Notes: a model not told the origin generated them from the letters alone. DNA of 64,000 nucleotides from IMGVR_UViG_3300041402_000314:62001-126000; one strand, 5' to 3'. Shown: positions 3,300 to 37,595, numbered from the stretch's first letter. Program-made: numbers and translations.

Positions 3300-3328
3300 T
3301 TGACATTTAAAAATTAACTTGATATGAT
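3300..3328 (+). promoter_or_regulatory. Sigma70-type promoter for rtcB
   Basis: TTGACA-N17-TATGAT. Confidence 0.7.
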
Positions 3329-3356
3329 TACCACCATAAACCAAAGGAGAAATAAA

Positions 3357-4499
3357 GTGAAAAATTATAAGTTGTTTATACCTGAAGAAAATATAGACCC
3401 GAAGGCATTACATCAGTTTCATGAGGCTATGGAGCAAGAGTGTATAGTTCAAGGAGCATTAATGCCAGATGTTCATGCTGGTTACTCTCTTCCTATTGGT
3501 GGAGTTGTAGCTTCTAAAGGCTTTATATTTCCTTGTTTTGTGGGATATGATATTGGTTGTGGAGTTGCTGGTGTCAAATTACCTATTAAGAAGGGCGATG
3601 TTGAAGCTCTCGGACAAGCGATATACGATGAGATACTTGATACAATCCCAATTGGATTTAAGCATAATGAGAAATGGTCTAAATGGGACTATTCTAATAT
3701 TCCAATAACTGAAGTTATGACTAATATTTTCCATGAGAAAGGAGGTTTGAAGCAACTTTGTTCTATGGGCGGAAATAACCATTTCATCGAACTAGGATAT
3801 GATGAAAATGATGATGTGTGGGCTACTACTCATACTGGAAGTCGTGGTGTTGGTCATGCTCTCGCTACTCATTACATGAGAATAGCTGGTGGTGGTAAAG
3901 CTAGAGAAGGTTGTTTTTCATTGGATGTCGAGTCTCAGGATGGTAAGGACTATATTACAGACTTGAATTTCTGTCTGGAATTTGCTTTGGAGAATAGAAA
4001 GCAGATAATTCAGAGAGTAATAAATGCTGTTGAAAAGGTACTTTCTACTAAGTTTAAGCCCTTCAATTTGAACGATGAGAAGGTGTTTATAAACAGAAAC
4101 CATAACCATGCGGAACTCAAGGATGGTCTATGGATTCATAGAAAGGGTGCTACCCATGCTGAAAAGGGAATGAGAGGTATCATTCCGGGTAATAGAAGAG
4201 ACGGTCTATTTGTAGTTGAAGGACTCGGTAATCCTGATAGCCTATATTCTAGCTCTCATGGAGCTGGTAGAATCAAAGGCAGAAAACAGGCTAGACAGGA
4301 CTTGAATCTCGATGATTATATTTCAACTATGAAAGGTATTGTAGGTGAGGTATCGGATGCTACCCTAGAGGAAGCTCCTGAAGCGTATAAGAATATCTTT
4401 GAGGTCATGGAGATGCAGAAGGAATTAGTAACAGTGAAGCATCATGTGAAGCCTCTCATTAACGTGAAAGCTTGTAAACCTATAAAGAATAAGAAATAA
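3357..4499 (+). CDS. rtcB: RtcB-family RNA ligase
   Basis: MPDVHAGY..PIG, VGYDIGCG, GGNNHFIE, HTGSRG, HNHA, HRKGAT, SHGAGR, EAPEAYK; GTG start after AAGGAG. Confidence 0.95.
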   Translation: MKNYKLFIPEENIDPKALHQFHEAMEQECIVQGALMPDVHAGYSLPIGGVVASKGFIFPCFVGYDIGCGVAGVKLPIKKGDVEALGQAIYDEILDTIPIGFKHNEKWSKWDYSNIPITEVMTNIFHEKGGLKQLCSMGGNNHFIELGYDENDDVWATTHTGSRGVGHALATHYMRIAGGGKAREGCFSLDVESQDGKDYITDLNFCLEFALENRKQIIQRVINAVEKVLSTKFKPFNLNDEKVFINRNHNHAELKDGLWIHRKGATHAEKGMRGIIPGNRRDGLFVVEGLGNPDSLYSSSHGAGRIKGRKQARQDLNLDDYISTMKGIVGEVSDATLEEAPEAYKNIFEVMEMQKELVTVKHHVKPLINVKACKPIKNKK

Positions 4500-7331: not shown

Positions 7332-8651
7332 ATGGAAAGAGTAAAGAAAATATGTGAAGAAGTTAAGAGAGCTGGCGGAAGAGCTTTTCTGGTTGGTGGA
7401 ATAGTTCGGGATAAATTCCTCGGTCTGGAATCCAAGGATATCGATCTTGAAGTTTTTGGTATAGAGCCTGAAGCACTTAAGACTATAATAGAGAAGTTCG
7501 GTAAGGTTAAAGAATGCGGAAAATCTTTTGGTGTTCTTAAGCTGGATGATCTCGATATATCACTACCTAGAAGAGAGAGAAAGACTGGTGTAGGTCATAA
7601 AGGATTCGAGACAGAATGCGACCCTCATATGAGCATAGAGGAAGCATGTAGTCGAAGAGATTTGACTATAAATGCTATGCTTTTTGACCCTCTGACAGAT
7701 GAGCTACTAGACCCTTTTAATGGTCTTAATGATATAGAGGATAGAGTTTTGAGGCACGTAGATGATATACGGTTCGCTGAAGACCCTCTTAGAGTTCTCA
7801 GGGTAGCTCAGTTTCATGCCAGATTCGATTTTAGAGTACATGACGATACTAATGAGCTTTGCCGTGTTCTTCTCGATGAGCTAAAACATCTTTCTAAGGA
7901 AAGGTTTTTCATAGAGTTCGAGAAGATGCTTATGAAAGCTAATATGCCGTCTAAAGCATTCGAATGGATGCTTGAGTTTGGTGTTCTCGATGAGCTGTTC
8001 CCAGAACTAGCGGTTCTCGAAACTATAGAGCAGGGCAGGAAATGGCATCCTGAAGGTAATGTATTTACACATACCATGCTTGCTCTTGATTCGGTTTCTA
8101 AAGAGGAAAGAACCATGACCTTGATGCTTGCTATACTTTGTCATGATCTTGGTAAGGCGGTCACTGGCGGAGTTCCTAAAGAAGATGACCCTGAGAGTAT
8201 AAGTTTTCATGGTCATGCTGAAGAGGGCGTTGCTGTTACCGATAAGTTTCTCAGGAAGCTAACTGATAACAATAAGCTGATAGAAGATGTCTGTACGCTC
8301 GTAGAATTCCATATGAGGCCACTTGAGTTGAAGGCTAACCCTAAGAAGAGGCTTGTAAGAAGACTGGCTCTCAAGGTCGATATACCGCTTCTAATGAAGC
8401 TGAATGAGGCTGATATGAGGGGTGGTCTTAGAACTCCAGAAGGTATAGATGAGATATTGGCTATATTCGAAGAGATAAAGAACGAAATACATCCTCTTGT
8501 AGAAGGTAGACATCTTATAGAATTGGGCTTGACACCTTCGCGTGAATTTGGTATAATATTGTCTGAGATATTCGAAGCACAATTGGATGGTGAATTCTCA
8601 ACTCTTGAAGATGGTCTGGAATTTACTAAAACTTTTATAGCGAAGAGATGA
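7332..8651 (+). CDS. cca: tRNA nucleotidyltransferase (CCA-adding/poly(A) polymerase family) with HD domain
   Basis: LVGGIVRD, KDIDLE, RRDLTINA, EDPLRVLR, HPEG.VFTH, CHDLGK, HGHAEEG. Confidence 0.92.
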   Translation: MERVKKICEEVKRAGGRAFLVGGIVRDKFLGLESKDIDLEVFGIEPEALKTIIEKFGKVKECGKSFGVLKLDDLDISLPRRERKTGVGHKGFETECDPHMSIEEACSRRDLTINAMLFDPLTDELLDPFNGLNDIEDRVLRHVDDIRFAEDPLRVLRVAQFHARFDFRVHDDTNELCRVLLDELKHLSKERFFIEFEKMLMKANMPSKAFEWMLEFGVLDELFPELAVLETIEQGRKWHPEGNVFTHTMLALDSVSKEERTMTLMLAILCHDLGKAVTGGVPKEDDPESISFHGHAEEGVAVTDKFLRKLTDNNKLIEDVCTLVEFHMRPLELKANPKKRLVRRLALKVDIPLLMKLNEADMRGGLRTPEGIDEILAIFEEIKNEIHPLVEGRHLIELGLTPSREFGIILSEIFEAQLDGEFSTLEDGLEFTKTFIAKR

Positions 8652-20834: not shown

Positions 20835-20863
20835 TTGACAAGTAAAATAAAATTTGATATAAT
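20835..20863 (+). promoter_or_regulatory. Sigma70-type promoter for the ligase
   Basis: TTGACA-N17-TATAAT. Confidence 0.8.
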
Positions 20864-20893
20864 ATGTTAATTAAAAAGTTGAGGAGAACAACT

Positions 20894-22735
20894 ATGAATA
20901 CTGAAAGGATCGAAGAACTAGAAAGAGAAATAGAAAAACACAATCATTTATATTGGGAGAAAAATGAACCTATCATAAATGATGAAAGTTATGATGTATT
21001 ACTCCAAGAGCTACTGACAATATACCCAGATAGTCATATCTTCACTACCTTAGAGGAACAGAAATCTATCGAACCCCAAAATAAGTATGTACATTCAGAC
21101 CCTATGCTGTCCCTTGAGAAATTCTATAGCGTAAAAGAAGTCATTACATGGATGAAGAAGATAGGTAGATCACCCCACGAACTCTTCAAAATGGAACTCA
21201 AACTCGATGGTATTTCTGGTCGCCTAGAGAATGGTAATCTTGCGACTAGGGGAGATGGTCGAGTCGGTGAGAATCATACATCTAAAATTCCTTTCATAGA
21301 ATTCAAGGTAGCTTCAGATAAAACAATCTGTGAAACTGTTGATTGTACTATCAATGGTGAGATCATTATAACGGATAAGTTCTTTGAAGATAATCTTAAG
21401 GGAGAATTCAAGAATTCGAGAAATGCTGTTGCTGGTCTGATGGGTAGAAAGCGTCCTGAAGAGATCGAAGGAATGGGAGTTACTTTCGTTGATTTTGATT
21501 ATGATAAAATCCAACATACAGGAAATGTCGATGCCTTTGAAATCGGATGGGATGATCTGGTAAAAAATCTTACTTCAAAGGGATTTCCTTTTGATGGTAT
21601 CGTAATCAAATTGGCTGATACTGACTACTACAAGCTGTTGGGCAATAAAACCAAAAGTCCTAGAGGTGCTATAGCGTTTAAGTTCGCTAATAAGAAGGGA
21701 ATTACCCCTGCTACAGAGATTACAGCCCAAGTAAGTAGGAAGGGTAAGCTTACTCCTGTTGCCGAACTAGAGCCTATTGAGTTGGCTGGTGTTACGATAT
21801 CCAGAGCTACGTGTCATAATTTTAAGTTCGTTAAGGACATGGGCATAGGAAAAGGTTCTGTTGTTGTAATTGAAAGAGCAGGAGATGTGATACCAAAAAT
21901 CACGAGCGTTGTCAAAGGTAAAATTGATGATGTTATATTCCCAACAAATTGTCCCTGTTGTGACACACCAACTGAATTTAATGGTGTAGACCTATGTTGC
22001 CCTAACACTACATGCCCAGACCGTCTGATAGAGCATCTGGCTTTCATGGCTAAAACCATTGGTATCGATGAGCTTGGCAGACCGACTGCCGAGAAAATAT
22101 ATAATTATTATGTGGAATCCACTCATAATAAAACAAATATTTTTAGATTAAATTCCATATCATATGAAGATATTCTTTCTTTAGAAGGGTATGGTGAGAA
22201 GAGTGCTAAGACACTTTATGGTAATATCCAGAACGCATTGAAAAATATCAATGAAATAGATTTTTTGGCTTCTTTTGGTATATCTGGATGGGGTAAGACT
22301 ATGGCAGACAAAGCCCTTACCAAAGCTGGTAGCCTAGATAATCTTCTCAAAATGAATAAAGAAGAATTGACTTCTATTGAAGGAATCGGAGAAATAATGG
22401 CCGAAAATCTAATAAATGGCGTTAAAGAACAATGTATACGATTAGTTCATGCTGATTATACTACCTTCATTGTCGAACCTACCAAAGAACACAATAACAT
22501 AGTAGATGGACAACACGAAAACATAGTAAAGTATACAATCTGTTTCACTGGTAAATTAGAAAATCCGAGGAAATTCTATGAAAATATTGCTAAAGAAAGA
22601 GGGATGAAACCTACTTCTTCTGTAAATAAAGACTTGAACATATTGATTACTGCTGATAAGAACAGCGTATCCAGTAAAATGAAAAAAGCTGAAAAATTAG
22701 GTATAGAGATTTTATCTTTAGAGGAATGGCTATAA
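20894..22735 (+). CDS. ligA: NAD-dependent DNA ligase
   Basis: HNHLY...D..YD, PMLSLEK, KLDG, TRGDGRVGE, RNAVAG, DGIVIK, AIAFKF, RAGDVIP, Zn finger, HhH, BRCT. Confidence 0.96.
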   Translation: MNTERIEELEREIEKHNHLYWEKNEPIINDESYDVLLQELLTIYPDSHIFTTLEEQKSIEPQNKYVHSDPMLSLEKFYSVKEVITWMKKIGRSPHELFKMELKLDGISGRLENGNLATRGDGRVGENHTSKIPFIEFKVASDKTICETVDCTINGEIIITDKFFEDNLKGEFKNSRNAVAGLMGRKRPEEIEGMGVTFVDFDYDKIQHTGNVDAFEIGWDDLVKNLTSKGFPFDGIVIKLADTDYYKLLGNKTKSPRGAIAFKFANKKGITPATEITAQVSRKGKLTPVAELEPIELAGVTISRATCHNFKFVKDMGIGKGSVVVIERAGDVIPKITSVVKGKIDDVIFPTNCPCCDTPTEFNGVDLCCPNTTCPDRLIEHLAFMAKTIGIDELGRPTAEKIYNYYVESTHNKTNIFRLNSISYEDILSLEGYGEKSAKTLYGNIQNALKNINEIDFLASFGISGWGKTMADKALTKAGSLDNLLKMNKEELTSIEGIGEIMAENLINGVKEQCIRLVHADYTTFIVEPTKEHNNIVDGQHENIVKYTICFTGKLENPRKFYENIAKERGMKPTSSVNKDLNILITADKNSVSSKMKKAEKLGIEILSLEEWL

Positions 22736-24108: not shown

Positions 24109-24678
24109 GTTGATATTAAATAATAAAGGAGAGTTTATTATGTACGCTGAAAATGAAGAATGTATCGAAGCGTTGGATAAGCTATTAGAAGAAGAAAAGT
24201 TAGCCGTACTATTTGATGAAGCGGTTAATCTCGATTTAAGAAATAAGATAGCGAATATTCTTTTTAATGCTGGAGTTAAACCAACGTATTCTCATGGTAT
24301 CTGCGGAAGCTCAACATGCGGATATGGTATGTTGGATGAGTATGGATATTGGCAATTTCCAGTATCAAAACAATTATTTGAGGAGAAATAAAAATGAAAT
24401 TTACGACAGAATTGAACGATAATAAAGCGAAAAGCAGTGAAGGTCGCTGGCGGAAATGTTGCGGAACTCATGCTAAAGGTCTCAATACAATAGAAAATGA
24501 TAATGCGCCAACGACATATCAGATTTATTGTAAGGAGTGTAATACTACTACCGCACCATATGAGACAACCCAAGAAGCGAGTTATGCTTGGAATAATAAA
24601 ATTCTGATGTAACGAATATGCTTGACAAATAAAATCAGTTTTGATACAATGTATTTGTAAGTGAGAAAAGGAGATGGA

Positions 24679-25245
24679 ATGAGAAACAACGAAATTATTA
24701 AAAAGGCTATTGAGTTTGCTAGGAAATTCCATGAAGGTCAACCATATTCGGATGTTTATGGCTATATAAGGCATCTTGAAATGGTCTATGATGTTCTGGT
24801 TAGGTTTGGCTTCAGGGAAGTAGTTATACTGGCCTCTTCTTGGTTACATGATATTATAGAAGATACTATAGTTTCTTATCAGACTGTTAAAATAGAATTT
24901 GGATTTGATATTGCTGAAGCGGTCTATGGTGTTACTGATGAACTTGGTAGGAACAGGAAAGAGAGGAAAGCTAAGACCTATCCTAAGATAAGGGCGAATA
25001 TAAACTCTCTTATACTCAAGTTGGCTGATCGGATAGCTAATGTAGAGTTCGGTGCTAGTGGTGTATTCGGAGACCCATCTAAAACAAAGATGTATCGGAA
25101 GGAGCAAGCTGAGTTCGAGGAAGCATTAGGATTTAATGAACTATCTGAGAAATTCAGTAAAGGTGCTTATGATAGTGAGGAAGAAAAAGAAGTGGATAAA
25201 AAGATTTTAGCAATGTGGTTACATTTGAGAGAACTACTAAAATAA
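24679..25245 (+). CDS. Stand-alone RelA/SpoT-type HD hydrolase (small alarmone hydrolase-like)
   Basis: FA..FHEGQ.Y...YIRHL..V, WLHDIIEDT, VTD, KLADRIAN; promoter TTGACA 24622 / TACAAT 24645. Confidence 0.85.
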   Translation: MRNNEIIKKAIEFARKFHEGQPYSDVYGYIRHLEMVYDVLVRFGFREVVILASSWLHDIIEDTIVSYQTVKIEFGFDIAEAVYGVTDELGRNRKERKAKTYPKIRANINSLILKLADRIANVEFGASGVFGDPSKTKMYRKEQAEFEEALGFNELSEKFSKGAYDSEEEKEVDKKILAMWLHLRELLK

Positions 25246-25857: not shown

Positions 25858-26655
25858 ATGAATAGAAGAGTTGAACTACTACTGATCGACCCACAGAATG
25901 ATTTCTGTGATAAAAATGGGAGTCTGTTTGTACCCGGAGCTGATGAAGATTCTCTCCGACTGGCAACCATGATCGAGAGGATAAAGAATAAAATTTATAA
26001 TATCCATGTTACCCTCGATACCCACCACTATCTGGATATAGCTCATCCGATGTTCTGGACGAACTCAGAGGGCAGTCATCCACAACCATTTACGCTAATA
26101 TCCAAGCAGGATATCGCTGATGGGACATGGAGAACTACCAATCCTGCGGAACAGGATTACGGTAAGCAGTATATCGAAACTCTTGAAGCAAACAATCGTT
26201 ATCTGCTTTGTATCTGGCCTCCGCACTGCCTAATCGGTACATGGGGTCATAATGTGGTAGAACCTGTTGCAAATGCCGTTATGGAATGGGAAAAACGCTA
26301 TAGGTTCGTAGATTACGTTACAAAGGGTAGTAACTATAAGACTGAACATTATAGTGCTGTTCAGGCCGAAGTACCTGACCCTGAAGACCCATCTACACTG
26401 ATCAATACACCGTTTATCGAGACGCTTGAAGAAGCAGATATAATCGGTATATCTGGACAAGCTCTTAGCCATTGTGTAGCGAATACGGTAACGGATATCG
26501 CTGATCAATTCGGTGACGATAATATCAAGAAGCTTGTGCTGCTTGAGGATACCACATCTCCAGTACCTACTTTCGAGGGTCTTGGAGAAGATTTCCTCAA
26601 GGATATGAAGGCGAGAGGTATGCAGGTAGCGAGGTCAACAGACTTTTTAGCATAA
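25858..26655 (+). CDS. pncA: Nicotinamidase/isochorismatase-family hydrolase
   Basis: IDPQNDFC, L.VPGA, DTH, H, WPPHC, KG, SHCV. Confidence 0.85.
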   Translation: MNRRVELLLIDPQNDFCDKNGSLFVPGADEDSLRLATMIERIKNKIYNIHVTLDTHHYLDIAHPMFWTNSEGSHPQPFTLISKQDIADGTWRTTNPAEQDYGKQYIETLEANNRYLLCIWPPHCLIGTWGHNVVEPVANAVMEWEKRYRFVDYVTKGSNYKTEHYSAVQAEVPDPEDPSTLINTPFIETLEEADIIGISGQALSHCVANTVTDIADQFGDDNIKKLVLLEDTTSPVPTFEGLGEDFLKDMKARGMQVARSTDFLA

Positions 26656-26943: not shown

Positions 26944-27321
26944 GTGAAAAGATTAATTAGTATAGTAATATTGTTGTTTTTATGTGTAGGATGTACCGAT
27001 GCTGACGTTGCATCAAGGAATTTGGCTAAGTCTGCTGACATGTTTGAGTTAGAGCGTAGGATAGTTTTTTATGATGCCATCCAAGGTGTCTATCTGCTGT
27101 CAATAGAGGGAAGATGTTCAATAGAAGTTAGGACAGCAAAGCTATCAGTGACATGTAAAACAAGTGAGACTGGTTATAAGAAGCACCATCTTGGATTATC
27201 GGATAATGTCACCTTCTTTTCGGAGCAGTTAAAATCGGCAAATGTTGGCGTTTACAATTATCGAGTAATTTTTAAGCCTGAAGTTTTAATCCCGAATATA
27301 GACTTAGAAACAAGCAGATAA
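26944..27321 (+). CDS. Conserved phage lipoprotein
   Basis: Lipobox CVGC after a signal peptide; ADVASRNL..SADMFE.RRIVFY...EGRCS...YKKH.LGLSDNVT. Confidence 0.8.
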   Translation: MKRLISIVILLFLCVGCTDADVASRNLAKSADMFELERRIVFYDAIQGVYLLSIEGRCSIEVRTAKLSVTCKTSETGYKKHHLGLSDNVTFFSEQLKSANVGVYNYRVIFKPEVLIPNIDLETSR

Positions 27322-27363: not shown

Positions 27364-28092
27364 ATGAATGAAGACATGGATTTTAACATACCAATAGTCG
27401 GTGGTGGAGCATTTAATTTCTCTGCTACTAAGCCTGAGGTTTTAGGTGCGACAGAATATACGATTGTAACTCTTGTTGTGGACATATCAGGAAGTGTAAT
27501 ACCGTTTTCGAATGAACTGCTTGAGACAGTAAAGAGTGTAGTCACCGCCTGTCAAAAGAGTCCGAGAGCAGAAAATTTACTTTTCAGATTAATATCGTTT
27601 AATGATACTGTGATGGAGGTTCATGGATTTGTTCAATTGAATGGAATCAAAGCGGATGATTATCAAGCCCTCCAGTGTGGCGGAAGAACTGCTTTGTTTG
27701 ATGCGGTTCATGAGGCCATAGGCGCAACAATTTCGTATGGTCAAAGATTGATCGATCAAGATTTTGACGCGAACGCAATTGTATTCGTAGTTACTGACGG
27801 GCTAGATTGGGGTTCTACTATGACACCAAGAACTATCAAAGACCTTGTTGATAAGGCGGTGATCGGGGAACAATTGGAAAGTCTGACCACAATTCTTGTT
27901 GGTGTAAACGCAGATGATTGTGAGGATGCATTGGAGAGGTTTGTGAAGGAAGCTAACCTTTCACAATTCATAAACATAGGAGATGTGACACCACAGAAAT
28001 TGGCTAAATTGGCTCAGTTTGTTTCGAAGTCAATTTCATCAACATCACAGTCTCTCGGCACTGGCGGAGCAAGTCAGCAACTAATCTTTTAA
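27364..28092 (+). CDS. vWA (TerY-like) domain protein
   Basis: MIDAS DISGS, GGRTALFDA, VVTDG, ILVGV. Confidence 0.88.
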   Translation: MNEDMDFNIPIVGGGAFNFSATKPEVLGATEYTIVTLVVDISGSVIPFSNELLETVKSVVTACQKSPRAENLLFRLISFNDTVMEVHGFVQLNGIKADDYQALQCGGRTALFDAVHEAIGATISYGQRLIDQDFDANAIVFVVTDGLDWGSTMTPRTIKDLVDKAVIGEQLESLTTILVGVNADDCEDALERFVKEANLSQFINIGDVTPQKLAKLAQFVSKSISSTSQSLGTGGASQQLIF

Positions 28093-28102
28093 TCTTCCAT
28101 TC

Positions 28103-28135
28103 AAAAATGGGAGGGCTTCGGCTCTCCCATTTTTT
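28103..28135 (+). terminator. Intrinsic (possibly bidirectional) terminator
   Basis: AAAAATGGGAGGGC-TTCG-GCTCTCCCATTTTT. Confidence 0.85.
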
Positions 28136-28137
28136 CC

Positions 28138-28166
28138 TTGACTTCCTATCTTCCTTTTGTTATAAT
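28138..28166 (+). promoter_or_regulatory. Sigma70-type promoter for the pncB-like operon
   Basis: TTGACT-N17-TATAAT. Confidence 0.75.
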
Positions 28167-28197
28167 GTGTTCATAATCTAATAAAGGAGATAAACCA

Positions 28198-29604
28198 ATG
28201 AAAGAATTTTTACTTTTAAAAAATGACTATTATCAGTTAAGCATGTGTGTGGCCTATATTTTATTAGACCAAGCAAATCAAAAAGCAGGGTTCGAGGGTT
28301 TTGTCCGTAGAATCAATTCCAAAATCAATCCAGACCAAGATTTATATTACTTCGGTGGTAATAAAGAGGCTAACGAGCTTCTGGAAACTGCTAAAACCGA
28401 GATTCAAGACCCTGAATTTCTGGAGACCTTTATATCATTAGTCGAGACTAAACTTCCTGAAGATAAGAGAGACCTCTATATACGTCTCATAAGAGATAAA
28501 TGGGAATATCTGGATAAGGATTTTCATTATACTGTCTATCCTGAGAACGCCAAATTGTTTCCATATGTTCCTGCTGTACAATTCTATGGCGCAAAATGGA
28601 TAGGTCAACTTCTGGAAACTCCATTAATAAATACAATCAATGGTAAAACTGGTTTCAATACTTTAGATCGTCTGGATGGTTTTGATAGTGAAGAAGAGAA
28701 AGATTATTTAAAAACTATCATGGGCGGAAATTTCCAGAATAATAATTCATACTTCAATACGTATAGACAAGAATTATCTATACGAGCTAAAGAATATAGA
28801 GATTCTACCAGCAAGATGTTATTTGAAGCTGGTTATAGACGAGCATGTGGATTTGATGCTTCTTGGTTAGCTACTCAAATAGCTTTAACTGAAGGATGGG
28901 ATGGTACTAGCAATACCTCCATCATGTTCGACAATCGTACATGGACAGATTATACTACTGAAGAAAAGCGACTCGTTAAGATAGGTGGAACCATAGCACA
29001 TAGTTTTATAATGAGCCATCCGACTCAATTAGAAGCCCTCTTCAATTGGAATTTAATATATCCAAATAGCACCATATTATCATGTACTTATGATGTCATG
29101 GAATGTTTGGAACTGATGATAAAATATAACATCAAACCAGCAATGGTTCGTATTGATGTGAATCCATTGGCTGATTTAGCTAGACAGGTTAGGGATAGGT
29201 TAGATTCTGTCGGGTGGTCTGATGTTAAAATATTCCTATCTGGTGACTTAACTCCAGAGAAATTGAGAAAATTTGAAGAAGATGGAGTACCCTTCGATGC
29301 ATGTATGGCGGGAACCTCTTATGTTAACGTAGGCGGAACTGATAAGGTCAATGCTGAATTTGTCTATAAGCTGGTTGAATTCGAGAAGGATGGGAAGACT
29401 TTTTATCCTGAGAAGAAAGCCAATGGGAAGGATAGTAAGGCTGGATTGAAATATGTAGAATATAGTAAATATAGAAAGACTTTAGATGTGACCTCCCATA
29501 AAACAGAAAATGTTATGGATTTTGAAATAAAAAAGACATGGATGGGTTTTTGGGGTCTTACTGAAAATAACGAAATAGAAGAAGTGAGGTTTATAAATGA
29601 TTAA
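28198..29604 (+). CDS. pncB: Nicotinate phosphoribosyltransferase-like (divergent PncB)
   Basis: LLKNDYYQLSM, QLLET..IN, FEAGYRRA, GTSN, GTIAHSFI, TYD, VRID, SGDL, VYKLVE. Confidence 0.8.
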   Translation: MKEFLLLKNDYYQLSMCVAYILLDQANQKAGFEGFVRRINSKINPDQDLYYFGGNKEANELLETAKTEIQDPEFLETFISLVETKLPEDKRDLYIRLIRDKWEYLDKDFHYTVYPENAKLFPYVPAVQFYGAKWIGQLLETPLINTINGKTGFNTLDRLDGFDSEEEKDYLKTIMGGNFQNNNSYFNTYRQELSIRAKEYRDSTSKMLFEAGYRRACGFDASWLATQIALTEGWDGTSNTSIMFDNRTWTDYTTEEKRLVKIGGTIAHSFIMSHPTQLEALFNWNLIYPNSTILSCTYDVMECLELMIKYNIKPAMVRIDVNPLADLARQVRDRLDSVGWSDVKIFLSGDLTPEKLRKFEEDGVPFDACMAGTSYVNVGGTDKVNAEFVYKLVEFEKDGKTFYPEKKANGKDSKAGLKYVEYSKYRKTLDVTSHKTENVMDFEIKKTWMGFWGLTENNEIEEVRFIND

Positions 29605-30445
29605 AAATATCGATAGTTTTATGACCATAGGCAATTCCCATGAGGTATGTGAAGATTATATCTATTCCTCTTTCGGAGTAGACCCTTATATTATTCTGTC
29701 AGATGGTTGTTCCAGTTCCAATAATACTGATGTGGGAGCAAGGGTTCTAGTTCACTCAGCAAGGAACATATTGAATCGGTTCATATATAAAACTGGTATG
29801 CCTATTAATGCCGATACAATGGGTGATATGATAGCAAATGAAGCAGATGAGACAATCAAGAAAATGGGATTGAATACTTCGGCTCTGGATGCTACTCTAA
29901 TCATAGCATATCGACTCAAAAATAAGATCGTAATCAATGTCTTCGGTGATGGTAATGTCATATTAAAGAAGAAAGACGGAACCACGAAAATATATAATTA
30001 CCAGTATGCCAATAATATGCCTTATTATCTATCTTACTATGTCGATGCTGGAAGGCAGAACCAATATTGTAGGGAGATGTTCGATGTTGATGAAGGCGGT
30101 AAGACCATGACCACAAATCTTCTTCGTCTTAATAATGACCCTGCCTTGAGGGATTATCATGAATATTCTCATGAAGATTTTGTTAAGATACCCACTTTCG
30201 TTCTTCCTATCGAAGAATATGCAATGATAGGTATAGCATCTGATGGAATAGAGTCTTTCGGTAATCCTGTTAGTGGCCTTAGAAAAGACCATTATGTTGT
30301 ATTGGAGGAGCTAACAGCCTTTAAAGGGACTGTTGGAGAGTTCCTTAAGAGAAGGTGCAAGAGAGCTATCAAGAACTATAAGAAAGAAGGGATAGAGCAT
30401 TATGATGATGTGTCTATCGGAGTAATGTTGATAGGAGATGAATGA
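29597..30445 (+). CDS. PP2C-like protein phosphatase
   Basis: GNSHEVCEDY, SDGCSS, ATL, GDG, SDGI, DDVS. Confidence 0.85.
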   Translation: MIKNIDSFMTIGNSHEVCEDYIYSSFGVDPYIILSDGCSSSNNTDVGARVLVHSARNILNRFIYKTGMPINADTMGDMIANEADETIKKMGLNTSALDATLIIAYRLKNKIVINVFGDGNVILKKKDGTTKIYNYQYANNMPYYLSYYVDAGRQNQYCREMFDVDEGGKTMTTNLLRLNNDPALRDYHEYSHEDFVKIPTFVLPIEEYAMIGIASDGIESFGNPVSGLRKDHYVVLEELTAFKGTVGEFLKRRCKRAIKNYKKEGIEHYDDVSIGVMLIGDE

Positions 30446-30614
30446 TGGATATACCAATAACTGATATATTTAAAAAGATTAGTTCTAAAGACAAACGTTT
30501 AGAAATATATTATGATATAGCATCTGAGAGAGTTATAATTAGACATGATAATGCTGCATGGAACTATCCTACCTTTGAAGAGGCTATTGCTGGATTAATA
30601 GGGAGTTATATTAA

Positions 30615-31136
30615 ATGAAAATAATATTTCTTGATATAGACGGTGTTCTGAACCACCAACGATTTTACAAAGAGAGGTTTGAAGCCAGAAAGCAAGATAA
30701 ATTGGATGGTAATCTCGTCAAAAAGTCTCAGATTGATCGTGAAGCAGAAGAGATAGACCCTGAATCTGTCGAAAATTTGAATGAACTTATTGAGAATACT
30801 GGAGCTAAAGTTGTTATTAGTTCTACATGGAGATTGGGTACAGAGATCGAAACACTTCAAGCCATTCTCGAAAAACGAGGATTTGTTGGAGAGGTTATAG
30901 GTAAAACCCCTGTAGGTTGTGGTTGTTGTCAAAGAGGAAATGAAATTCATAAATGGTTAGGTGATAATCGCGATATCATAGATGAAGAAGGTAATAATTA
31001 TATAATTCTCGATGATGATAGTGATATGCTCTACTGGCAACGAAATAATTTTATAAACGTAGATCAATATGTTGGATTAACACCTAAACAGGTTTATAAA
31101 GCTACGAGATTTTTAACAGGTATAGGTCAATTGTGA
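30615..31136 (+). CDS. HAD phosphatase (Swiss-army-knife RNA-repair type)
   Basis: IFLDIDGVLN, VISSTWR, RGNEI..WL, YIILDDDSDM, GLT. Confidence 0.85.
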   Translation: MKIIFLDIDGVLNHQRFYKERFEARKQDKLDGNLVKKSQIDREAEEIDPESVENLNELIENTGAKVVISSTWRLGTEIETLQAILEKRGFVGEVIGKTPVGCGCCQRGNEIHKWLGDNRDIIDEEGNNYIILDDDSDMLYWQRNNFINVDQYVGLTPKQVYKATRFLTGIGQL

Positions 31137-31558
31137 AAGAGAATAAATTTAGGGTATGGGATACTTTTACTAAAAAGATGGTCTTTGAAGGATTTAATGT
31201 CATAGGAGAAGTAACATGCTTTAATGGTATTGAACAATATGGAGATGAACATCCTAATCCTGCATATGAATCATCATTGATGCGACTTAATGATTTCATT
31301 CTCATGCAATTTACTGGTCTTGCGGATAAAAACGGTAAAGACTTATATGAAAATGACTTGGTAATACACAAACATGATTTATCCGTATATCAGGTGATCT
31401 GGGTAGATGAAGAAGCTAAATTCATACTCAATTTAGTAAAGGGAAATGGTAATGATAGTATTGATGAAGATTTAAGTCCGTTGAATCTATCGCTATTTAC
31501 GATTATAGGAAATATATATGAGAAACCTGAATGGTTGGAGATAGAAAATGAAAGGTAG
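31133..31558 (+). CDS. YopX-family protein
   Basis: KFRVWD, MQFTGLADKNGKDLYENDLV, IIGNIYE.PE. Confidence 0.9.
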   Translation: MKENKFRVWDTFTKKMVFEGFNVIGEVTCFNGIEQYGDEHPNPAYESSLMRLNDFILMQFTGLADKNGKDLYENDLVIHKHDLSVYQVIWVDEEAKFILNLVKGNGNDSIDEDLSPLNLSLFTIIGNIYEKPEWLEIENER

Positions 31559-32177
31559 AATTTATAAAATACCACTATTGGAAAGGTTCACCTCTGTTAA
31601 TAGAGCATGTTTTACTTTTAGTCGTTGTAGGCCGATGACCGTAGATTCAATAGGTCTTTATGTGTATTATGATGATGAAAAGGATATTACAGTTAGTAAT
31701 GTTCGTCAGTCGCTAATAGGCGTTAAAGATACTCGTGTTATAGTAGTGGCGAAAAATGTAAATGAAGCTCTCGATAAATTTTATGATGAGTGGGATGGTG
31801 CTAAAGTAGGCGGTGATTTCATAGATTCTAAGGCACTATGGGTCAATCCTAATAGAAATATAGTTGAATATCCTAGCTGTAGTCTGTTAAACATAAACAG
31901 TAAAGATGAGCGTATTTGTGGGAAAGAAATAACGATGGGTGAAGACGAATATGCTCATAATTGTGGCGAATTTGGTTGGTGTACTTTAGATGGATATGAT
32001 AGCGATATGGATTGTCCTGTAGAAGCATGTAGTGGGTTTAATTATGAACTTAAACCCACGATAAAGACATGTAATCATAAAACAGGTATTTTTAAATATG
32101 AGTCATGTGATATGTTTTTAGATTGGAGTAAGAAATTTTTTAGCTCTACAGAAAACGTAAATTTAGAGGACTGAAAA

Positions 32178-33860
32178 ATGGCTAAATATACAGTAAGAGG
32201 AAAGGGAGAAACGACCTTAACCGATAGAAATTTCATCACTGAAGGCGGTGAGGGGAAAGTCTATGGGAAAGGCTCTACTATATACAAAATATATAGCGAT
32301 ATCAATAAGATGATACCAGAAGCCAAGATAAAGGAACTCGAAGTATTGACTTCGCCCAATATAATGAATCCTCAGAATGTCATACTAGATCAGAAATCTC
32401 GTATGGTTGGATTCACTATGGATAGGATAGACAACTCTCTGCCTATATGTAAACTGTTTACTACTGACTTCAGGAATAGAAATAATATAACGCCTGAGAT
32501 CATAGTCGATCTTGTAGATAATATACAAGAGACATTGAATTCCATACACGAAAAGAAAATAATATGCGTGGATTTAAACGAATTAAATTATCTGGTCAAG
32601 GAAAACGACTTTAAGACACCTTATTTTATAGATGTCGATTCGTACCAGACACCTAATTTTCCTGCTACTGCGATAATGCCTAACATAAGGGATTATAATA
32701 CGAATGGATTTAATCGCTTGACAGACTGGTATAGTTTCGCTATAATAGCTTTTCAGTTGTTCATTGGCATACATCCTTTTAAAGGTAAGAATCCTAATTT
32801 CAAGAAGAATAGCCTCATAGAGCGCATGAAACAGAATGTTAGTGTCTTTGATAAGGATACGAGGGTTCCTGCCTCTACAAGGGATTTTAGCCACATTCCT
32901 AGCCATTATATGGCGTGGTTCGAAAGGCTATTCCAGAAAGGTGAGAGATTAGAGCCACCTTCTATAGCTGGACTGCTTAATGTAATGCAGGTTCAAACAG
33001 AAATAATAGATAGTACGGATAACTTTATAATAAAATTTCTCCGAGACTATAAGAATCCTGTTACCAGTTATTTCAATTTTAGTGGTACTGATGGAACCAC
33101 CACTACGAAGGAAGGTTATATAGGCAAGGTAGGATATGATATCGATAACGCCAATTCGGTTCTGGTATTCGGTGAAAAATTCCTTACACCAATAATAGCG
33201 ACTGTAACGGATGAAAAATTAGTCTTGACAAACCTGAAGACAAATGTTATAATCCCTAATGTATTCATAAACGCTAAGAAAATAACTAAGGTAGGGAATA
33301 AGTTATTTGTATATCAGGGCGAGAAGTTCTTGGAAGTAGGTATAGTTGAAATGAATGGTAAGGTACTGGCGAACGTAGCTAAGACCTACAATGTTATGCC
33401 TAACTCCACTCAGGTATTTGATGGGTTCCTTTATAGCACTATGTTGGAGAAACCATATCTGATGATACCTCAGAATGGTAATTTCGTTCCTGTTCCAGTA
33501 AAAGAGCTGGAGAAATACAAGATCATAGACGGTAAATTTGAGAACGGTGTCTGTGTGATAACAGCATATAAAGATGGTGGCTATGATCGGTTTACCTTTG
33601 TCTTCGAGGGAGTTAATTATACCTTCAGGAAAGATGAGGATGTAGCTGGAAAATCGGTTAACTTCACTGTTCTAAGCAATGGAATAGTCGTTAGTATAAC
33701 TGATGATGGAACTATGGAGATATTTAAGAATGATAGTAGCCATAATAAGATGAAGGTTATACATGACCCTGCTATCAGTTCCGATATGAAACTCTGTAAT
33801 AACGGCCTCGAAGTATTATTCTATCGAGGCAATGAAATGTACTCTTTAAAGATGAAGTGA
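32178..33860 (+). CDS. Ser/Thr protein kinase-like protein with a beta-rich C-terminal domain
   Basis: GGEGKVY, IYKIY, DLNELNYLV, IDVDSYQ, TDWYSFA...GIHPFKG. Confidence 0.88.
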   Translation: MAKYTVRGKGETTLTDRNFITEGGEGKVYGKGSTIYKIYSDINKMIPEAKIKELEVLTSPNIMNPQNVILDQKSRMVGFTMDRIDNSLPICKLFTTDFRNRNNITPEIIVDLVDNIQETLNSIHEKKIICVDLNELNYLVKENDFKTPYFIDVDSYQTPNFPATAIMPNIRDYNTNGFNRLTDWYSFAIIAFQLFIGIHPFKGKNPNFKKNSLIERMKQNVSVFDKDTRVPASTRDFSHIPSHYMAWFERLFQKGERLEPPSIAGLLNVMQVQTEIIDSTDNFIIKFLRDYKNPVTSYFNFSGTDGTTTTKEGYIGKVGYDIDNANSVLVFGEKFLTPIIATVTDEKLVLTNLKTNVIIPNVFINAKKITKVGNKLFVYQGEKFLEVGIVEMNGKVLANVAKTYNVMPNSTQVFDGFLYSTMLEKPYLMIPQNGNFVPVPVKELEKYKIIDGKFENGVCVITAYKDGGYDRFTFVFEGVNYTFRKDEDVAGKSVNFTVLSNGIVVSITDDGTMEIFKNDSSHNKMKVIHDPAISSDMKLCNNGLEVLFYRGNEMYSLKMK

Positions 33861-35188
33861 GGTATTGAAAATGGAAAAGCCATATATTGAAGAAAAAGTT
33901 ATAACCACACTTAGAAAGTATAATCCAGATTATGGTGATGATAGAATATGTATGTGCGGTCATCCCTACTATCGACATTTTGATAGCTATGAAGATATGT
34001 ATCCTCGCGGTTGTAAGTATTGTGGTTGTTTTACTTTTAAAGAAGAAAATCCGAATGAATGGCGAAAATCTTCTATTCGTCCTACAAAAGCTGGATATTA
34101 CGAAACGAAATGTATATACGATTCAAAAGATCACATATATGAAAGATTCTACAATAGAAAAACAGATAGGTGGGGAACTAGAAATTTTCCCTACCAGCCT
34201 ACTTACTGGAGACCAATCGCGTGACACCATATTTAATAATTTTTACAACAGCATTTATCCAGATATTTTTTGTATCTTTACAGACAATACAGATTGCTAG
34301 GGTTGATACTATGGAGTATGCAGCAACTAGAATATTCGTGGTAAGTATTTGTATTGCACTAGCATGGCTTTATAATATAAATAAAGGCGTAAAGGATTGC
34401 CGTCTAACAAAATTTATTTATATTATGGGTACATCAACTGGTGCTGTTTGTGGAGCTAAAGTAAACGCTATAATTGGAGCGATAATATGAAAAAGGAAAA
34501 TATTCAAACCCCTGCTGATTTCGAAGAATATTATGGTAGTCTGCCGAGTGTGGAAACAAAATGGAAGAAGGTGGATATCGTAAAGGAAGAATTTGATATC
34601 ATGGATTTGATGGGCGCAACGGTGGTCTATCACGGAAATACCAGTGAGGATAAATCTATAGGTATGGTGGGAACTCACGAGAGAGAAATGGTCATAGTTT
34701 GGAAAGATAATTGTGAGGATACCATTATAGATTCCGATCATGGTAGACAAGTTCTTAAGGAAAGTAGAATATTTCCGATATAAGGGGAGAAAATGGATAA
34801 TAGAATTTTTAACGTAAACGGCAAGGGTTGTGAAGATTTACAGGCTACATTAGAGCTTGTATTCAAACAATCGCGCATGACTTGTGATGGTTGGTCATTT
34901 AGTAGAAAGCATGGACTGATATTACATTGGTGTGATGGAGATGCCGTAAATAAACTCCCTTCATCTATAAAGTCCGAAGACGCTACAAAACTCGTGTGGT
35001 CGTGGCTACAGACTGATGAAGCTGGAACTGTTGAACAGGAGCATTGGGATAGTAATTATCAACATGATGGACATAATGGGACAGGATGGAGAGTCTACTG
35101 TGAAGATTGGGGTCATGCGAATAATGATTGGGGTGCTATTTGCGCTATAAAACCAGTCTATCTATGGTATGGTAAATAAGGAGAAGTC

Positions 35189-35647
35189 ATGGAGCAGAAA
35201 TACGAAAGTCCTGATGTTAATATTAGGGAAAAAAGTGTTACGTATAAAGAATACAAGAATCCGTCTGTAGCTGTAGACATAATCATAATAAATGAAGATG
35301 GGAGAATAGTTCTGATCGAAAGAAAGAATCCGCCTTATGGTTGGGCATTACCCGGAGGATTTGTTGATTGTGGTGAAACACTTATGAATGCTGCTATCAG
35401 GGAAGCTAAAGAGGAAACATGTGTCGATGTTAAAATATTGGAAAGTTTGGGTGTATACGATGACCCTAAAAGAGACCCTAGACAACATGTAATTTCTGCT
35501 GTTTTCATAGCAACCGCTTTTAATCAGACACCAAAAGCTGCGGATGACGCAAAGAATCTTAAGATATATTCTTTAGATGATTTACCAGAATTGGCTTTCG
35601 ATCATACTAAAATTTTAGATGACTTTATGGGATGGGCTAAAAACTAA
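35189..35647 (+). CDS. Nudix hydrolase (ADP-ribose pyrophosphatase-like)
   Basis: [26 protein letters not shown] Nudix box; RDPR; LAFDH. Confidence 0.92.
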
Positions 35648-36511: not shown

Positions 36512-37135
36512 ATGCTTAGAATAGGCTTGACTGGAAATATGGGTTCTGGGAAGGATACGGTAGCCCAAATACTCTCTAAAAAGAAAGGATTCATAGAATC
36601 CAATTCTGATGATATCTGTAGATGGTTATGGGAGAATGATGAGGATATTCAAATAGCGGTCTCTGCTCTTTTCTGTGGTGCTACTGATAGAGCAACCATA
36701 GCTAAATTGGCTTTCGATAATGAAAAAAAGAGAAAGAAATTAGAACAGATTTTTCATCCCAGAGTCGATGGATTACATGCTTGTGATTTTTACATGCATT
36801 ATGATACCGAAGATTTCTTGATCGTCAATTCTCCTCTTCTTATAGAGACTGGTTATTATGAGAAGATGGATTTTGTAGTGGTTGTTGGTGCTGATAGAGA
36901 GACCTGTATCGAGCGAGTTCTGGAACGAAATAAGAATCTAAGTCGAGAAGACATAGAGAAAAGATTGGATATCCAGATGCCTTTAGAAAATATGTTTCCA
37001 TATGCTGATTATGTTGTGGAAAATTGCGGAACTAAAAAAGAGCTTGACAATGAAGTTGAAAAGTTGTATAATAGGCTTCTTGAACTTAAATCTTATGAGG
37101 TGACTAGCAGTGAAAGTAGCAATATATCCGGGTAG
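36512..37135 (+). CDS. coaE: Dephospho-CoA kinase
   Basis: IGLTGNMGSGKDT, DRA.IA...F, LEQIFHP, PLLIE, RL..QMP, AD.V.EN. Confidence 0.88.
   Translation: MLRIGLTGNMGSGKDTVAQILSKKKGFIESNSDDICRWLWENDEDIQIAVSALFCGATDRATIAKLAFDNEKKRKKLEQIFHPRVDGLHACDFYMHYDTEDFLIVNSPLLIETGYYEKMDFVVVVGADRETCIERVLERNKNLSREDIEKRLDIQMPLENMFPYADYVVENCGTKKELDNEVEKLYNRLLELKSYEVTSSESSNISG
37044..37072 (+). promoter_or_regulatory. Consensus sigma70 promoter inside the coaE 3' end
   Basis: TTGACA-N17-TATAAT with extended TG, ~40 nt before the coaD start. Confidence 0.7.
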
Positions 37136-37595
37136 TTTTAATCCCTTTCATAGAGGACATGTCGATGTAGTTAGACAAGCCTTAAAGCTATTCGATAAAG
37201 TGATCATAGCTAAAGGCTGTAATCCAGATAAGAATGAATACGTATTGCCTATATTAACCTTCTCCGATGAATTTGTTGGAAAAGAATTACATGGAATTAA
37301 AGATTTCTATGGAAAGGACTCTATGGAAGTGGATAAGTTTACTGGATTATTTACTGACTACATCGAGGAATTCAAAGACGGTATAAAATCTGAGGAATTA
37401 GATGTCCAATTAGCCGTCATCAAAGGTCTCAGGAACGGTCAAGACCTTGAATATGAGAAGAATCAACAATATTGGAATGAAGATTTGGGTATAGAGATTC
37501 CTTTCTTCTATATAATATCTGATAGAAAATATTGTCATATATCCAGTTCTGCTATAAGAGGATTGGAGAAATTTAAGGAGAATAAAGATGGGTGA
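37110..37595 (+). CDS. coaD: Phosphopantetheine adenylyltransferase
   Basis: AIYPGSFNPFHRGH, NPDK, KGLR...D.EYE, ISSSAIR. Confidence 0.88.
   Translation: MKVAIYPGSFNPFHRGHVDVVRQALKLFDKVIIAKGCNPDKNEYVLPILTFSDEFVGKELHGIKDFYGKDSMEVDKFTGLFTDYIEEFKDGIKSEELDVQLAVIKGLRNGQDLEYEKNQQYWNEDLGIEIPFFYIISDRKYCHISSSAIRGLEKFKENKDG

Follow-up and report, generated by a model that had tools for sequence, protein, structure and literature searches.

A nicotinamidase-linked vWA, PP2C and kinase gene set in a jumbo phage, and its inferred role as a phosphorylation switch on NAD salvage

The TerY-P (TerY-phosphorylation) triad comprises a TerY-like vWA protein, a PP2C phosphatase and a Ser/Thr kinase, for example E. 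coli yegL-pphC-yegI (Anantharaman et al. 2012; Gao et al. 2020; both as summarised in PMC11090510; YegI biochemistry in bioRxiv 10.1101/819920), and TerY-P-like modules have reported anti-phage activity (PMC11090510, citing Gao et al. 2020). The 64,000-nucleotide stretch analysed here (IMGVR_UViG_3300041402_000314:62001-126000, "the window") carries the same three families in the same order, vWA > PP2C > kinase, and the three genes are contiguous in most relatives. The kinase domain is YegI-like (BLASTP to E. coli YegI, 2e-10), including the activation-loop Ser that YegI autophosphorylates (10.1101/819920), and the PP2C matches PphC at 90% hhalign probability. The vWA aligns to YegL over its whole length (172 columns), including the Ser-rich C-terminus, but only weakly (40% probability, E 3e-4), and its assignment to the TerY/YegL type is left undecided by this match; no comparison with TerY itself was made. 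The locus differs from described triads in that a nicotinamidase is a fixed fourth gene, and in that the kinase ends in a predicted beta-propeller, whereas described triads carry a C-terminal zinc ribbon (CoCoNuT-associated) or OB fold (stand-alone defence triads; PMC11090510) and YegI has membrane helices. Its neighbors are NAD-salvage and ADP-ribose-processing genes in phages and bacteria, not restriction, DNA-processing or tellurite-resistance genes, and sequence similarity of the vWA and PP2C to the E. coli proteins is low. PADLOC gave no TerY-P hit, but it also gave none for E. coli YegL, PphC or YegI, so this negative carries no weight; anti-phage activity was not assayed.

Three other described systems are comparable. 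NrtR-regulated nicotinamide salvage operons (nrtR-pncA-pncB-nadD-nadE; Rodionov et al. 2008, PMC2330246) share the enzymatic logic of Preiss-Handler salvage of nicotinamide, and bacterial homologs of the present genes sit in operons with NrtR, PncA, PncB and NadE; however, described NrtR regulons contain no kinase, phosphatase or vWA, the PncA here belongs to a longer subfamily (about 265-300 aa, against about 180-216 aa for the nicotinamidase chains it matches), and in the phage the Nudix protein lacks the DNA-binding domain. Phage-encoded routes that rebuild NAD+ are also known, mainly from large and jumbo phages: NARP1 (Adps+Namat), NARP2 (NadV+NMNAT), NARP3 (PnuC+NadR), and the pncB-nadD-nadE clusters of "NAD-jumbo phages" (bioRxiv 10.1101/2024.02.11.579819; PMC13464706; PMC11662467); Preiss-Handler gene clusters in jumbo phages have already been reported. 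The present route starts instead from nicotinamide through PncA and carries a kinase/phosphatase/vWA set, which none of these papers mentions in such clusters. No Prs/Adps-like gene (Pribosyltran_N match) was found in the 204-kb record, which is about 89% complete so that the absence is not absolute, and no canonical NAPRTase/NadV-family (PF04095) hit was found either; no experiment yet shows that this route counters any defense. Finally, the ARG-centered NrtR/WYL systems with vWA chaperones, predicted to undo viral ADP-ribosylation (Iyer et al. 2022, PMC9503650 section 3.8), likewise have a Nudix-type ADPR-sensing regulator, an ADP-ribosylglycohydrolase, a vWA protein, and NADAR or Macro companions. 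Those systems center on ARG plus a rhodanese-type phosphatase and are not described with PncA, PP2C or a Ser/Thr kinase, while here ARG is an occasional companion only (6 of 80 loci). No paper describing the four-gene set was found.

The genome is that of a real phage; it is a 204-kb IMG/VR virus record, and the window holds a portal, a major head protein, DnaB and a primase. The relevant features are as follows.

20864..22735 (+), NAD-dependent DNA ligase (LigA), an NAD+ consumer encoded 3 kb upstream
25858..26655 (+), long nicotinamidase (PncA-like, 265 aa), first gene of the conserved tetrad
26944..27321 (+), insert, small Phage_VG64 / phrog_478 protein with an N-terminal lipoprotein-like signal
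27364..28092 (+), vWA protein (242 aa), weakly similar to YegL, with an intact MIDAS site and a conserved Ser-rich C-terminal helix
28109..28166 (+), terminator-like hairpin (28109-28126) followed by an 11/12 sigma-70-like promoter with a TG extension (28138-28166), between vWA and the PncB-like gene
28198..29604 (+), divergent nicotinate phosphoribosyltransferase (PncB-like, 468 aa), a lineage-specific insert between vWA and PP2C
29597..30445 (+), PP2C-type Ser/Thr phosphatase (282 aa)
30615..32174 (+), inserts between PP2C and kinase: HAD_SAK_2 phosphatase (30615-31136), YopX (31133-31558) and Cys-rich orf208 (31548-32174)
32178..32972 (+), kinase domain of the YegI-like Ser/Thr kinase (residues 1-265)
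33000..33860 (+), predicted C-terminal beta-propeller of the kinase (residues 275-560)
35189..35647 (+), Nudix hydrolase, a frequent companion of the tetrad

An earlier note, made from the sequence alone, had placed the vWA, PP2C and kinase genes at these positions, with the PncB-like gene between the first two and the nicotinamidase upstream, and this observation is correct in every gene position. The nicotinamidase is the most conserved of the four genes (45-71% identity). A profile of its family hits yeast Pnc1 (2h0r) at 1.5e-17, and the top nine of its 14 PDB hits are nicotinamidases or their homologs, before other isochorismatase-family hydrolases appear; the Pfam Isochorismatase hit for the window protein alone is below the cut-off. 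Its Asp-Lys-Cys catalytic triad (D11, K156 and C206) is invariant in 77 viral homologs, and in 53 bacterial homologs K156 and C206 are invariant and D11 is kept in 52, with one alignment gap. The metal site D54, H56 and H123 (the last in the WPxHC motif) is invariant in the 77 viral and 53 bacterial homologs, the triad residues align with Pnc1, and the motif IWPxHC aligns to Pnc1's ILWPVHC. Hydrolysis of nicotinamide to nicotinate was not assayed, and an insertion of about 60 residues relative to canonical, structurally solved enzymes could change the specificity of the protein. The vWA gene product has a Pfam VWA match of E 2e-5, just over the cut-off, and its AF2 model (pLDDT 88) matches integrin I domains by Foldseek. 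Its D40, S44, T109 and D145 are conserved, and S221, S223, S225 and S228, which lie on the last helix (residues 210-229), are conserved in viral and bacterial homologs.

The PP2C (Pfam PP2C_2, 6.5e-13) keeps the metal-binding aspartates of motifs 1, 2, 8 and 11; D20, D36-G37, D118, D216-G217 and D270-D271 are conserved in 81 viral and 54 bacterial homologs. The kinase (Pfam Pkinase 3.3e-8; AF2 pLDDT 89.7) has the G-loop G23-G24, K37, D132, N137 and the DFG-equivalent D152, which are kept in 80-83 of 83 viral and 78-80 of 80 bacterial homologs, and the activation-loop S155 is conserved as well. The part of the AF2 model C-terminal to the kinase domain is all-beta, and Foldseek matches it to the LRRK2 kinase-WD40 region, Nup133, PROPPIN and FBXW propellers. 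A catalytically dead kinase or phosphatase had been named in advance as a finding that would overturn the proposal, but the catalytic residues of both are kept in nearly all of about 160 homologs.

The PncB-like protein reaches 1.6e-40 with NCBIfam NAPRTase models but stays below their cut-offs; Pfam NAPRTase_N scores 2e-6, its closest solved structure is the NAPRTase 2f7f (4.5e-10), and its gene overlaps the PP2C start by 8 nt. Among the viral loci a homolog of this type occurs only in L005, the nearest relative, in which vWA, PP2C and kinase are contiguous. The hairpin and promoter upstream of it, found by a consensus scan only, are consistent with the PncB-like gene having arrived as an insert with its own promoter, which is an inference. 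The VG64-like protein (Pfam Phage_VG64 1.8e-45; N-terminus MKRLISIVILLFLCVGC) is absent from all 83 related loci, and HAD_SAK_2 (Pfam 9e-31), YopX (Pfam 1e-17) and orf208 occur in 4, 3 and 0 of these loci, respectively, and not in this position. The interleaving of the triad with NAD genes, which the earlier note had described, is not the conserved feature; the VG64-like gene, the PncB-like gene, HAD, YopX and orf208 are lineage-specific inserts that have pulled the module apart in this phage.

Lack of conserved co-occurrence in relatives was the other outcome specified beforehand as refuting, and the linkage is in fact strongly conserved. In a search seeded on the kinase, all four genes are present in 77 of 83 related viral loci (mostly contigs of 100-620 kb), and five of the six exceptions end too early to tell; the usual order is PncA > vWA > PP2C > kinase, with gaps down to 1 nt and 4-nt overlaps. 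A reciprocal search seeded on PncA found 193 viral relatives, and among the best 80 loci vWA is in 74, PP2C in 72, the kinase in 71, and all four in 68. When all ORFs were clustered across 84 loci, only these four were near-universal; the next most frequent real genes are NAPRTase (30 loci in that cluster; 32 of 84 once the divergent PncB-like type of this window and L005 is added), Nudix (26), NadE (20 plus 6 Gln-type), NADAR (13) and NadD (13). In all, 52 of 84 loci hold at least one such neighbor and 32 show no further NAD gene within 10 kb; a background rate of NAD genes in random jumbo-phage segments was not measured. The Nudix hydrolase of the window (Pfam NUDIX 2.6e-25) has the NadM Nudix domain and the ADPR-responsive repressor as its closest NCBIfam models, and NrtR-type versions lie near the tetrad in 20 bacterial loci. 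Homologs of LigA (Pfam and PHROG hits; phrog_3869 at 1.7e-128) lie near the tetrad in 9 viral loci.

In bacteria, 268 kinase relatives were found in GTDB genomes, and the tetrad is present in 43 of the 80 loci examined, including complete 3.8-6.2 Mb chromosomes, although many "genome" loci are MAG contigs that may be mis-binned phages. Typical operons are PncB-NadE-PncA-vWA-PP2C-kinase-NrtR (bacterial locus L152) and PncB-NrtR-PncA-vWA-PP2C-kinase (L135); companions include ADP-ribosylglycohydrolase (ARH), PARG and Tpt1, and the flanks hold LeuA-like and UvrA genes. In 3 of the 4 genomes with a NAPRTase hit (5 were searched), the only NAPRTase is the one beside the tetrad. Some bacterial lineages (Thiotrichaceae, Desulfobacterales) have the kinase without the other three nearby, and nine loci lack PP2C. 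The kinase tree groups bacterial sequences by phylum, with phage sequences interleaved, and at least 5 label changes are forced; the module therefore works in both settings. The phage genome itself also encodes NadD (locus L086:1408-2385(-), TIGR00482 9e-30) and NadE (locus L088:1348-2259(-), TIGR00552 7e-42), so with PncA and the PncB-like gene the Preiss-Handler set is complete, although the PncB-like and NadD hits are below the curated cut-offs.

The earlier note had read the locus as a TerY-P-like phospho-switch, possibly coupled to nicotinamide/NAD status and used for inter-phage competition or host take-over, and this interpretation is supported only in part: the resemblance to the triad holds and the coupling to NAD proves to be its strongest element, but the conserved unit is a tetrad, and the anti-phage or competition reading has no direct support. 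Among the alternatives, none of which seems likely, the best surviving is that the module removes nicotinamide rather than rebuilding NAD+. A switched PncA would destroy nicotinamide to relieve product inhibition of NAD-consuming enzymes such as ADP-ribosyltransferases, sirtuins or Tpt1, or would deny nicotinamide to a rival's NAD+ reconstitution pathway (NARP1 and NARP2 both need nicotinamide), with the triad sensing when to do so. The association with ARH, PARG, Tpt1, NADAR and Nudix genes favors this idea, as do bacterial loci L157 and L159, in which an ADP-ribosylglycohydrolase takes PP2C's place just upstream of the kinase, and the 45 of 84 viral loci that lack PncB, NadD and NadE within 10 kb. 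On the other hand, PncB is the commonest extra neighbor in phages, NadE and NadD also recur, compact bacterial operons join PncB and NadE directly to PncA, and this phage holds the whole route to NAD+.

Slightly less likely still is a stand-alone TerY-P-type conflict module acting in defense, superinfection exclusion or inter-phage competition, with the NAD genes as neighbors without a functional tie. The gene order and families match the triad, the kinase has weak PADLOC hits to the defense-associated kinases mad6, PD-T4-6 and MkoA, and the kinase tree shows repeated phage-cell exchange, which is typical of conflict genes. However, PncA is as tightly linked as the triad members, the neighbors are overwhelmingly NAD or ADP-ribose enzymes, bacterial copies sit in NrtR operons beside the only PncB and next to housekeeping genes rather than in recognizable defense islands, the C-terminal domain of the kinase is a predicted propeller and not an OB fold or zinc ribbon, and no nuclease or other effector is conserved nearby. 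A host take-over kinase that phosphorylates host proteins, as T7 gp0.7 does, limited by PP2C and with vWA and PncA as unrelated passengers, is the least likely, since although the kinase looks active, carries a predicted protein-binding propeller and lies in a region of early or metabolic genes with strong sigma-70-type promoters, the four-gene linkage is reciprocal and the same genes are kept together in bacterial chromosomes, where take-over makes no sense.

The most likely function, held somewhat more probable than not, is phospho-regulated recycling of nicotinamide to NAD+. In this view PncA turns nicotinamide, the product of NAD+-cleaving enzymes including NAD-depleting defenses, into nicotinate, and PncB, NadD and NadE carry nicotinate on to NAD+ by the Preiss-Handler route. 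The kinase, phosphatase and vWA would most likely form a reversible switch on the first step: the kinase would phosphorylate the cluster of conserved serines on the last helix of the vWA, which corresponds to the helix that gates the metal site in integrin I domains, PP2C would reverse this, and the state of the vWA and/or the propeller would govern the activity or assembly of PncA. The gene identities, folds, intact catalytic residues, reciprocal co-occurrence in phages and bacteria, NAD/ADP-ribose neighborhood and complete pathway in this genome rest directly on the analysis, whereas the phosphorylation target, the direction of control, the signal and the benefit to the phage are deduced; no result links any triad protein physically or functionally to PncA, and a single complex prediction gave no answer. 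The conserved tetrad, which also sits in bacterial NAD-recycling operons, probably puts NAD salvage under a phosphorylation switch. The likely benefit to the phage is keeping NAD+ up for replication, for example for its NAD-dependent ligase, and during NAD-depleting host immunity.

The sequence belongs to a 204-kb IMG/VR virus record estimated at 89% complete, with a GC content of about 35% and nearly all genes on the + strand; no reads were mapped to it. It is a real phage; it carries a portal, a major head protein, a DnaB helicase, a primase, RtcB, a CCA-adding enzyme and an NAD-dependent ligase. The five ORFs named in the earlier note lie exactly where that note placed them, and its observation is confirmed. 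Five further genes lie between them, among them the last four listed here.
25858-26655, nicotinamidase-like (PncA)
27364-28092, vWA protein
28198-29604, PncB-like, overlapping the next gene by 8 nt
29597-30445, PP2C
32178-33860, Ser/Thr kinase
26944-27321 (+), VG64-family gene
30615-31136, HAD_SAK_2 phosphatase
31133-31558, YopX
31548-32174 (+), orphan Cys-rich ORF (orf208)

The nicotinamidase scores below the Pfam cut-off as a single sequence, but a 24-member family profile hits yeast Pnc1 at 1.5e-17; the top nine of its 14 PDB hits are nicotinamidases or their homologues, and the rest are other isochorismatase-family hydrolases. The Asp-Lys-Cys triad (D11, K156, C206) and the metal site (D54, H56 and H123, the last in WPxHC) are invariant in the 77 viral homologues, and in the 53 bacterial ones the only departure is one alignment gap at D11. 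The protein belongs to a long subfamily of 265-300 aa. A profile of the vWA family found no PDB sequence match, and its fold was instead confirmed by structure; the AF2 model has pLDDT 88 and matches integrin I domains. The MIDAS residues D40, S44, T109 and D145 are conserved, as are four serines (S221, S223, S225 and S228) on the last helix in phage and bacterial homologues; the equivalent region of Escherichia coli YegL is also Ser-rich and aligns to it.

A catalytically dead kinase or phosphatase had been named in advance as grounds for abandoning the original idea, and neither was found. The PP2C keeps all metal-binding aspartates and matches E. coli PphC at 90% hhalign probability. The kinase keeps the Gly loop, K37, D132, N137 and D152, as well as an activation-loop serine, S155, that aligns with a YegI autophosphorylation site (bioRxiv 10.1101/819920); its AF2 model (pLDDT 89.7) shows a kinase domain followed by a predicted beta-propeller at residues 275-560. 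A PADLOC search gave no TerY-P hit for the vWA or PP2C, but E. coli YegL, PphC and YegI, used as a positive control, also gave none, so this negative says nothing. The PncB-like protein is a divergent NAPRTase. The possibility that it is a NARP1 Namat was rejected, since no Adps/Prs-like gene is present in the 89%-complete record and the closest families and structures are NAPRTases.

The conserved unit is four genes. Megablast of the region against GenBank phages found nothing, and among 50,697 GenBank phage records only three uncultured huge phages carry this kinase; they also carry the vWA, the PP2C and the nicotinamidase. A search for related loci with the single kinase sequence found nothing, but an alignment-seeded scan of IMG/VR gave 91 relatives, of which 80 loci were fetched. 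Conserved co-occurrence in relatives, whose absence would have counted against the proposal, was strong: with family HMMs, 77 of 83 loci hold all four genes within the stretch examined. Five of the six exceptions end too early or have the gene just outside, and only L046 (one of these viral loci) truly lacks them. Sizes are uniform, at about 265-300, 245-255, 260-300 and 555-580 aa for PncA, vWA, PP2C and kinase, and the usual order is PncA > vWA > PP2C > kinase, with gaps down to 1 nt and frequent 4-nt overlaps. The reverse test, seeded on the nicotinamidase, found 193 viral relatives; in the best 80 loci, vWA is present in 74, PP2C in 72 and the kinase in 71. A full census of the long PncA and the propeller kinase across all GTDB and IMG/VR records was not carried out. 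The nicotinamidase is the most conserved of the four.

The genes that split the triad in this window are not conserved. The VG64-like gene and orf208 occur in none of the related loci, HAD in 4 and YopX in 3, and this type of PncB occurs only in L005, the closest relative, in which vWA-PP2C-kinase are contiguous. A terminator-like hairpin and a near-consensus promoter sit between the vWA and the PncB-like gene, which fits an insertion. The VG64-like protein (Phage_VG64 / phrog_478) is annotated in PHROGs as a recombination directionality factor, but it begins with a lipoprotein-like signal and lipobox (MKRLISIVILLFLCVGC), which fits a secreted lipoprotein better than an RDF. Two Cys-rich orphan ORFs flank the kinase, orf208 and a second at 33865-34224 (+); the latter (CxC...CxxC, zinc-ribbon-like) has a 61%-identical relative about 2.7 kb downstream of the kinase in viral loci L010 and L011.

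The window also holds ten perfect TTGACA-N17-TATAAT promoters, all on the + strand (618, 8529, 11778, 18244, 20835, 24080, 32718, 33225, 37044 and 53251), against 0.04 expected by chance. Two lie inside the kinase ORF; the one at 32718 overlaps the conserved TDWYSFAII codons, and the one at 33225 lies at the start of the propeller. Metatranscriptomes were not analysed for their use or for co-expression. One promoter ends at 20863, directly abutting the LigA start codon at 20864, which suggests a leaderless transcript.

The neighborhood is one of NAD+ and ADP-ribose metabolism. When every ORF of the 84 viral loci was clustered, the most frequent further genes, apart from antisense shadows, were canonical NAPRTase (30 loci; 32 with the divergent type), Nudix (26), NadE (20, plus 6 of the glutamine-dependent type), NADAR (13), NadD (13), NAD-dependent ligase (9), Thg1 (9) and RNA ligase (7). 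In all, 52 of 84 loci have at least one NAD or ADP-ribose gene within 10 kb, and 39 have a biosynthetic one; no background rate for random jumbo-phage segments was measured. This phage also encodes NadD and NadE about 65 kb away, and with PncA and the PncB-like protein it therefore has the full Preiss-Handler set; it has no Prs/Adps-like gene, so it is not NARP1. The CTP_transf_like (cytidylyltransferase-like) gene at 37110-37595 (+) was considered as NadD and rejected; it is CoaD (phosphopantetheine adenylyltransferase), which forms an overlapping pair with CoaE (dephospho-CoA kinase; 36512-37135, +), and these are the last two steps of coenzyme A synthesis. Just upstream of the module, at 24661-25245 (+), lies an HD_4 / SpoT-like metal-dependent phosphohydrolase, a possible (p)ppGpp hydrolase, homologs of which occur near the tetrad in 6 loci. 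RNA-repair genes accompany the NAD genes as well: RtcB, the CCA-adding enzyme and HAD_SAK_2 in this window (3324-4499, 7332-8651 and 30615-31136), Thg1 and RNA ligase near the tetrad elsewhere (related loci L033 and L008), and Tpt1 in bacteria. This hints at a wider tRNA-repair and NAD island.

The module is also cellular. A scan of one genome per GTDB species found 268 kinase relatives, and of the 80 loci fetched, 43 hold all four genes; many of the rest are short contigs. Carriers include Acidobacteriota, Armatimonadota (with complete 3.8-6.2 Mb chromosomes), Myxococcota, Spirochaetota, Desulfobacterales and Gammaproteobacteria. Operons among these bacterial loci include PncB-NadE-PncA-vWA-PP2C-kinase-NrtR (L152), PncB-PncA-vWA-PP2C-kinase-NrtR (L110) and PncB-NrtR-PncA-vWA-PP2C-kinase-methyltransferase (L135). 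Recurrent companions are NrtR (20 loci), NAPRTase (22), a 740-aa methyltransferase-domain protein (15), ADP-ribosylglycohydrolase (6), PARG (4) and Tpt1 (4). The 740-aa protein directly follows the kinase in Acidobacteriota (L116:11737-13959, L135:11643-13943, L127:11739-13952 and 12 other bacterial loci) and has an N-terminal SAM methyltransferase domain and a large unassigned C-terminal part; its role, perhaps pyridine methylation, is not known. Flanks hold housekeeping genes such as LeuA-like and UvrA, and in three of the four genomes with a NAPRTase hit (five searched) the sole NAPRTase is the one beside the tetrad. A Pfam Isochorismatase scan of five bacterial genomes listed 1-4 other family members per genome, but their positions were not compared with the tetrad loci, so it does not tell whether the tetrad member is the only nicotinamidase there. 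These are cellular NAD-salvage loci, not prophages or evident defense islands.

There are variants. Nine loci lack PP2C, and in two from Armatimonadota (L157:8861-9958 and L159:1759-2832) an ADP-ribosylglycohydrolase sits immediately upstream of the kinase, in the position where PP2C normally is; this may be a swap of one reversing enzyme for another. Thiotrichaceae and some Desulfobacterales have the kinase alone, often followed by NrtR; for example, in L096, L098, L107 and L108 (Thiotrichaceae and relatives), large sulfur bacteria carry the propeller kinase without PncA, vWA or PP2C within 10 kb, yet an NrtR-type Nudix regulator still lies directly downstream. In a FastTree of 150 kinases (supports are SH-like only), the bacterial sequences group by phylum and the phage sequences are interleaved, and at least five label changes are forced. 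This suggests repeated exchange, with no direction established.

The analysis thus demonstrates four intact, co-inherited genes, their folds and active sites, and their fixed association with each other and with NAD salvage, whereas the mechanism is inferred. In this view PncA would feed nicotinamide into the Preiss-Handler route, and the kinase and PP2C would reversibly phosphorylate the serine cluster on the C-terminal helix of the vWA protein. In integrin I domains this helix is established to couple to the metal site, a point that was not tested here. The vWA and/or the propeller would then set PncA's activity or assembly, and the phage would gain a supply of NAD+ for its own NAD-dependent enzymes and resilience against NAD-depleting defenses. 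A single co-folding prediction of the kinase propeller, vWA and PncA scored 0.00 and returned no answer, which is not evidence for or against binding; phosphorylated serines were not modeled. The interpretation offered in the earlier note is partly supported: the NAD coupling that it suggested is real and stronger than it supposed, while its defense or competition reading has no direct support.

The triad resembles TerY-P in families and order, but it fails one defining feature, since the kinase's C-terminal domain is a (predicted) propeller rather than a zinc ribbon or OB fold, and it also lacks the usual neighborhood (PMC11090510). Described NrtR regulons hold pncA, pncB, nadD and nadE but no kinase, phosphatase or vWA (PMC2330246). 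Jumbo-phage NAD+ synthesis clusters, including pncB-nadD-nadE, are reported without these genes (PMC11662467), and NARP1, NARP2 and NARP3 use other enzymes. The survey of viral NAD+/ADPr systems describes ARG-centered NrtR/vWA systems but not this tetrad (PMC9503650). Full-text searches for the combination found nothing, although they did not cover the 2012 paper that defined TerY-P, so an earlier mention there is not excluded.

A bolder reading is possible but rather unlikely. The PncA-vWA-PP2C-kinase tetrad would be a previously undescribed post-translational control system for NAD+ salvage, shared by bacteria of at least six phyla and by hundreds of jumbo and huge phages. It would sense NAD+ breakdown, for instance through its propeller or the vWA metal site, and switch on nicotinamide recycling; in phages it would be a fourth, regulated NAD+ reconstitution route that defeats NAD-depleting immunity.

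NAD+ is a central battleground between phages and bacterial immunity, and the three characterized phage rebuilding routes are all unregulated enzyme pairs. For annotation, the long PncA and the propeller kinase should be read as one unit in jumbo-phage genomes. The tetrad would also give the poorly understood TerY-P type triad a concrete, assayable output, namely nicotinamidase activity and NAD+ level; no physiological substrate has been identified for the E. coli member YegI (10.1101/819920). A conserved kinase/phosphatase/adaptor set welded to the first enzyme of nicotinamide salvage, present both in bacterial NAD operons and in some of the largest known phages, would be the first sign that NAD+ recycling is under a phospho-switch.
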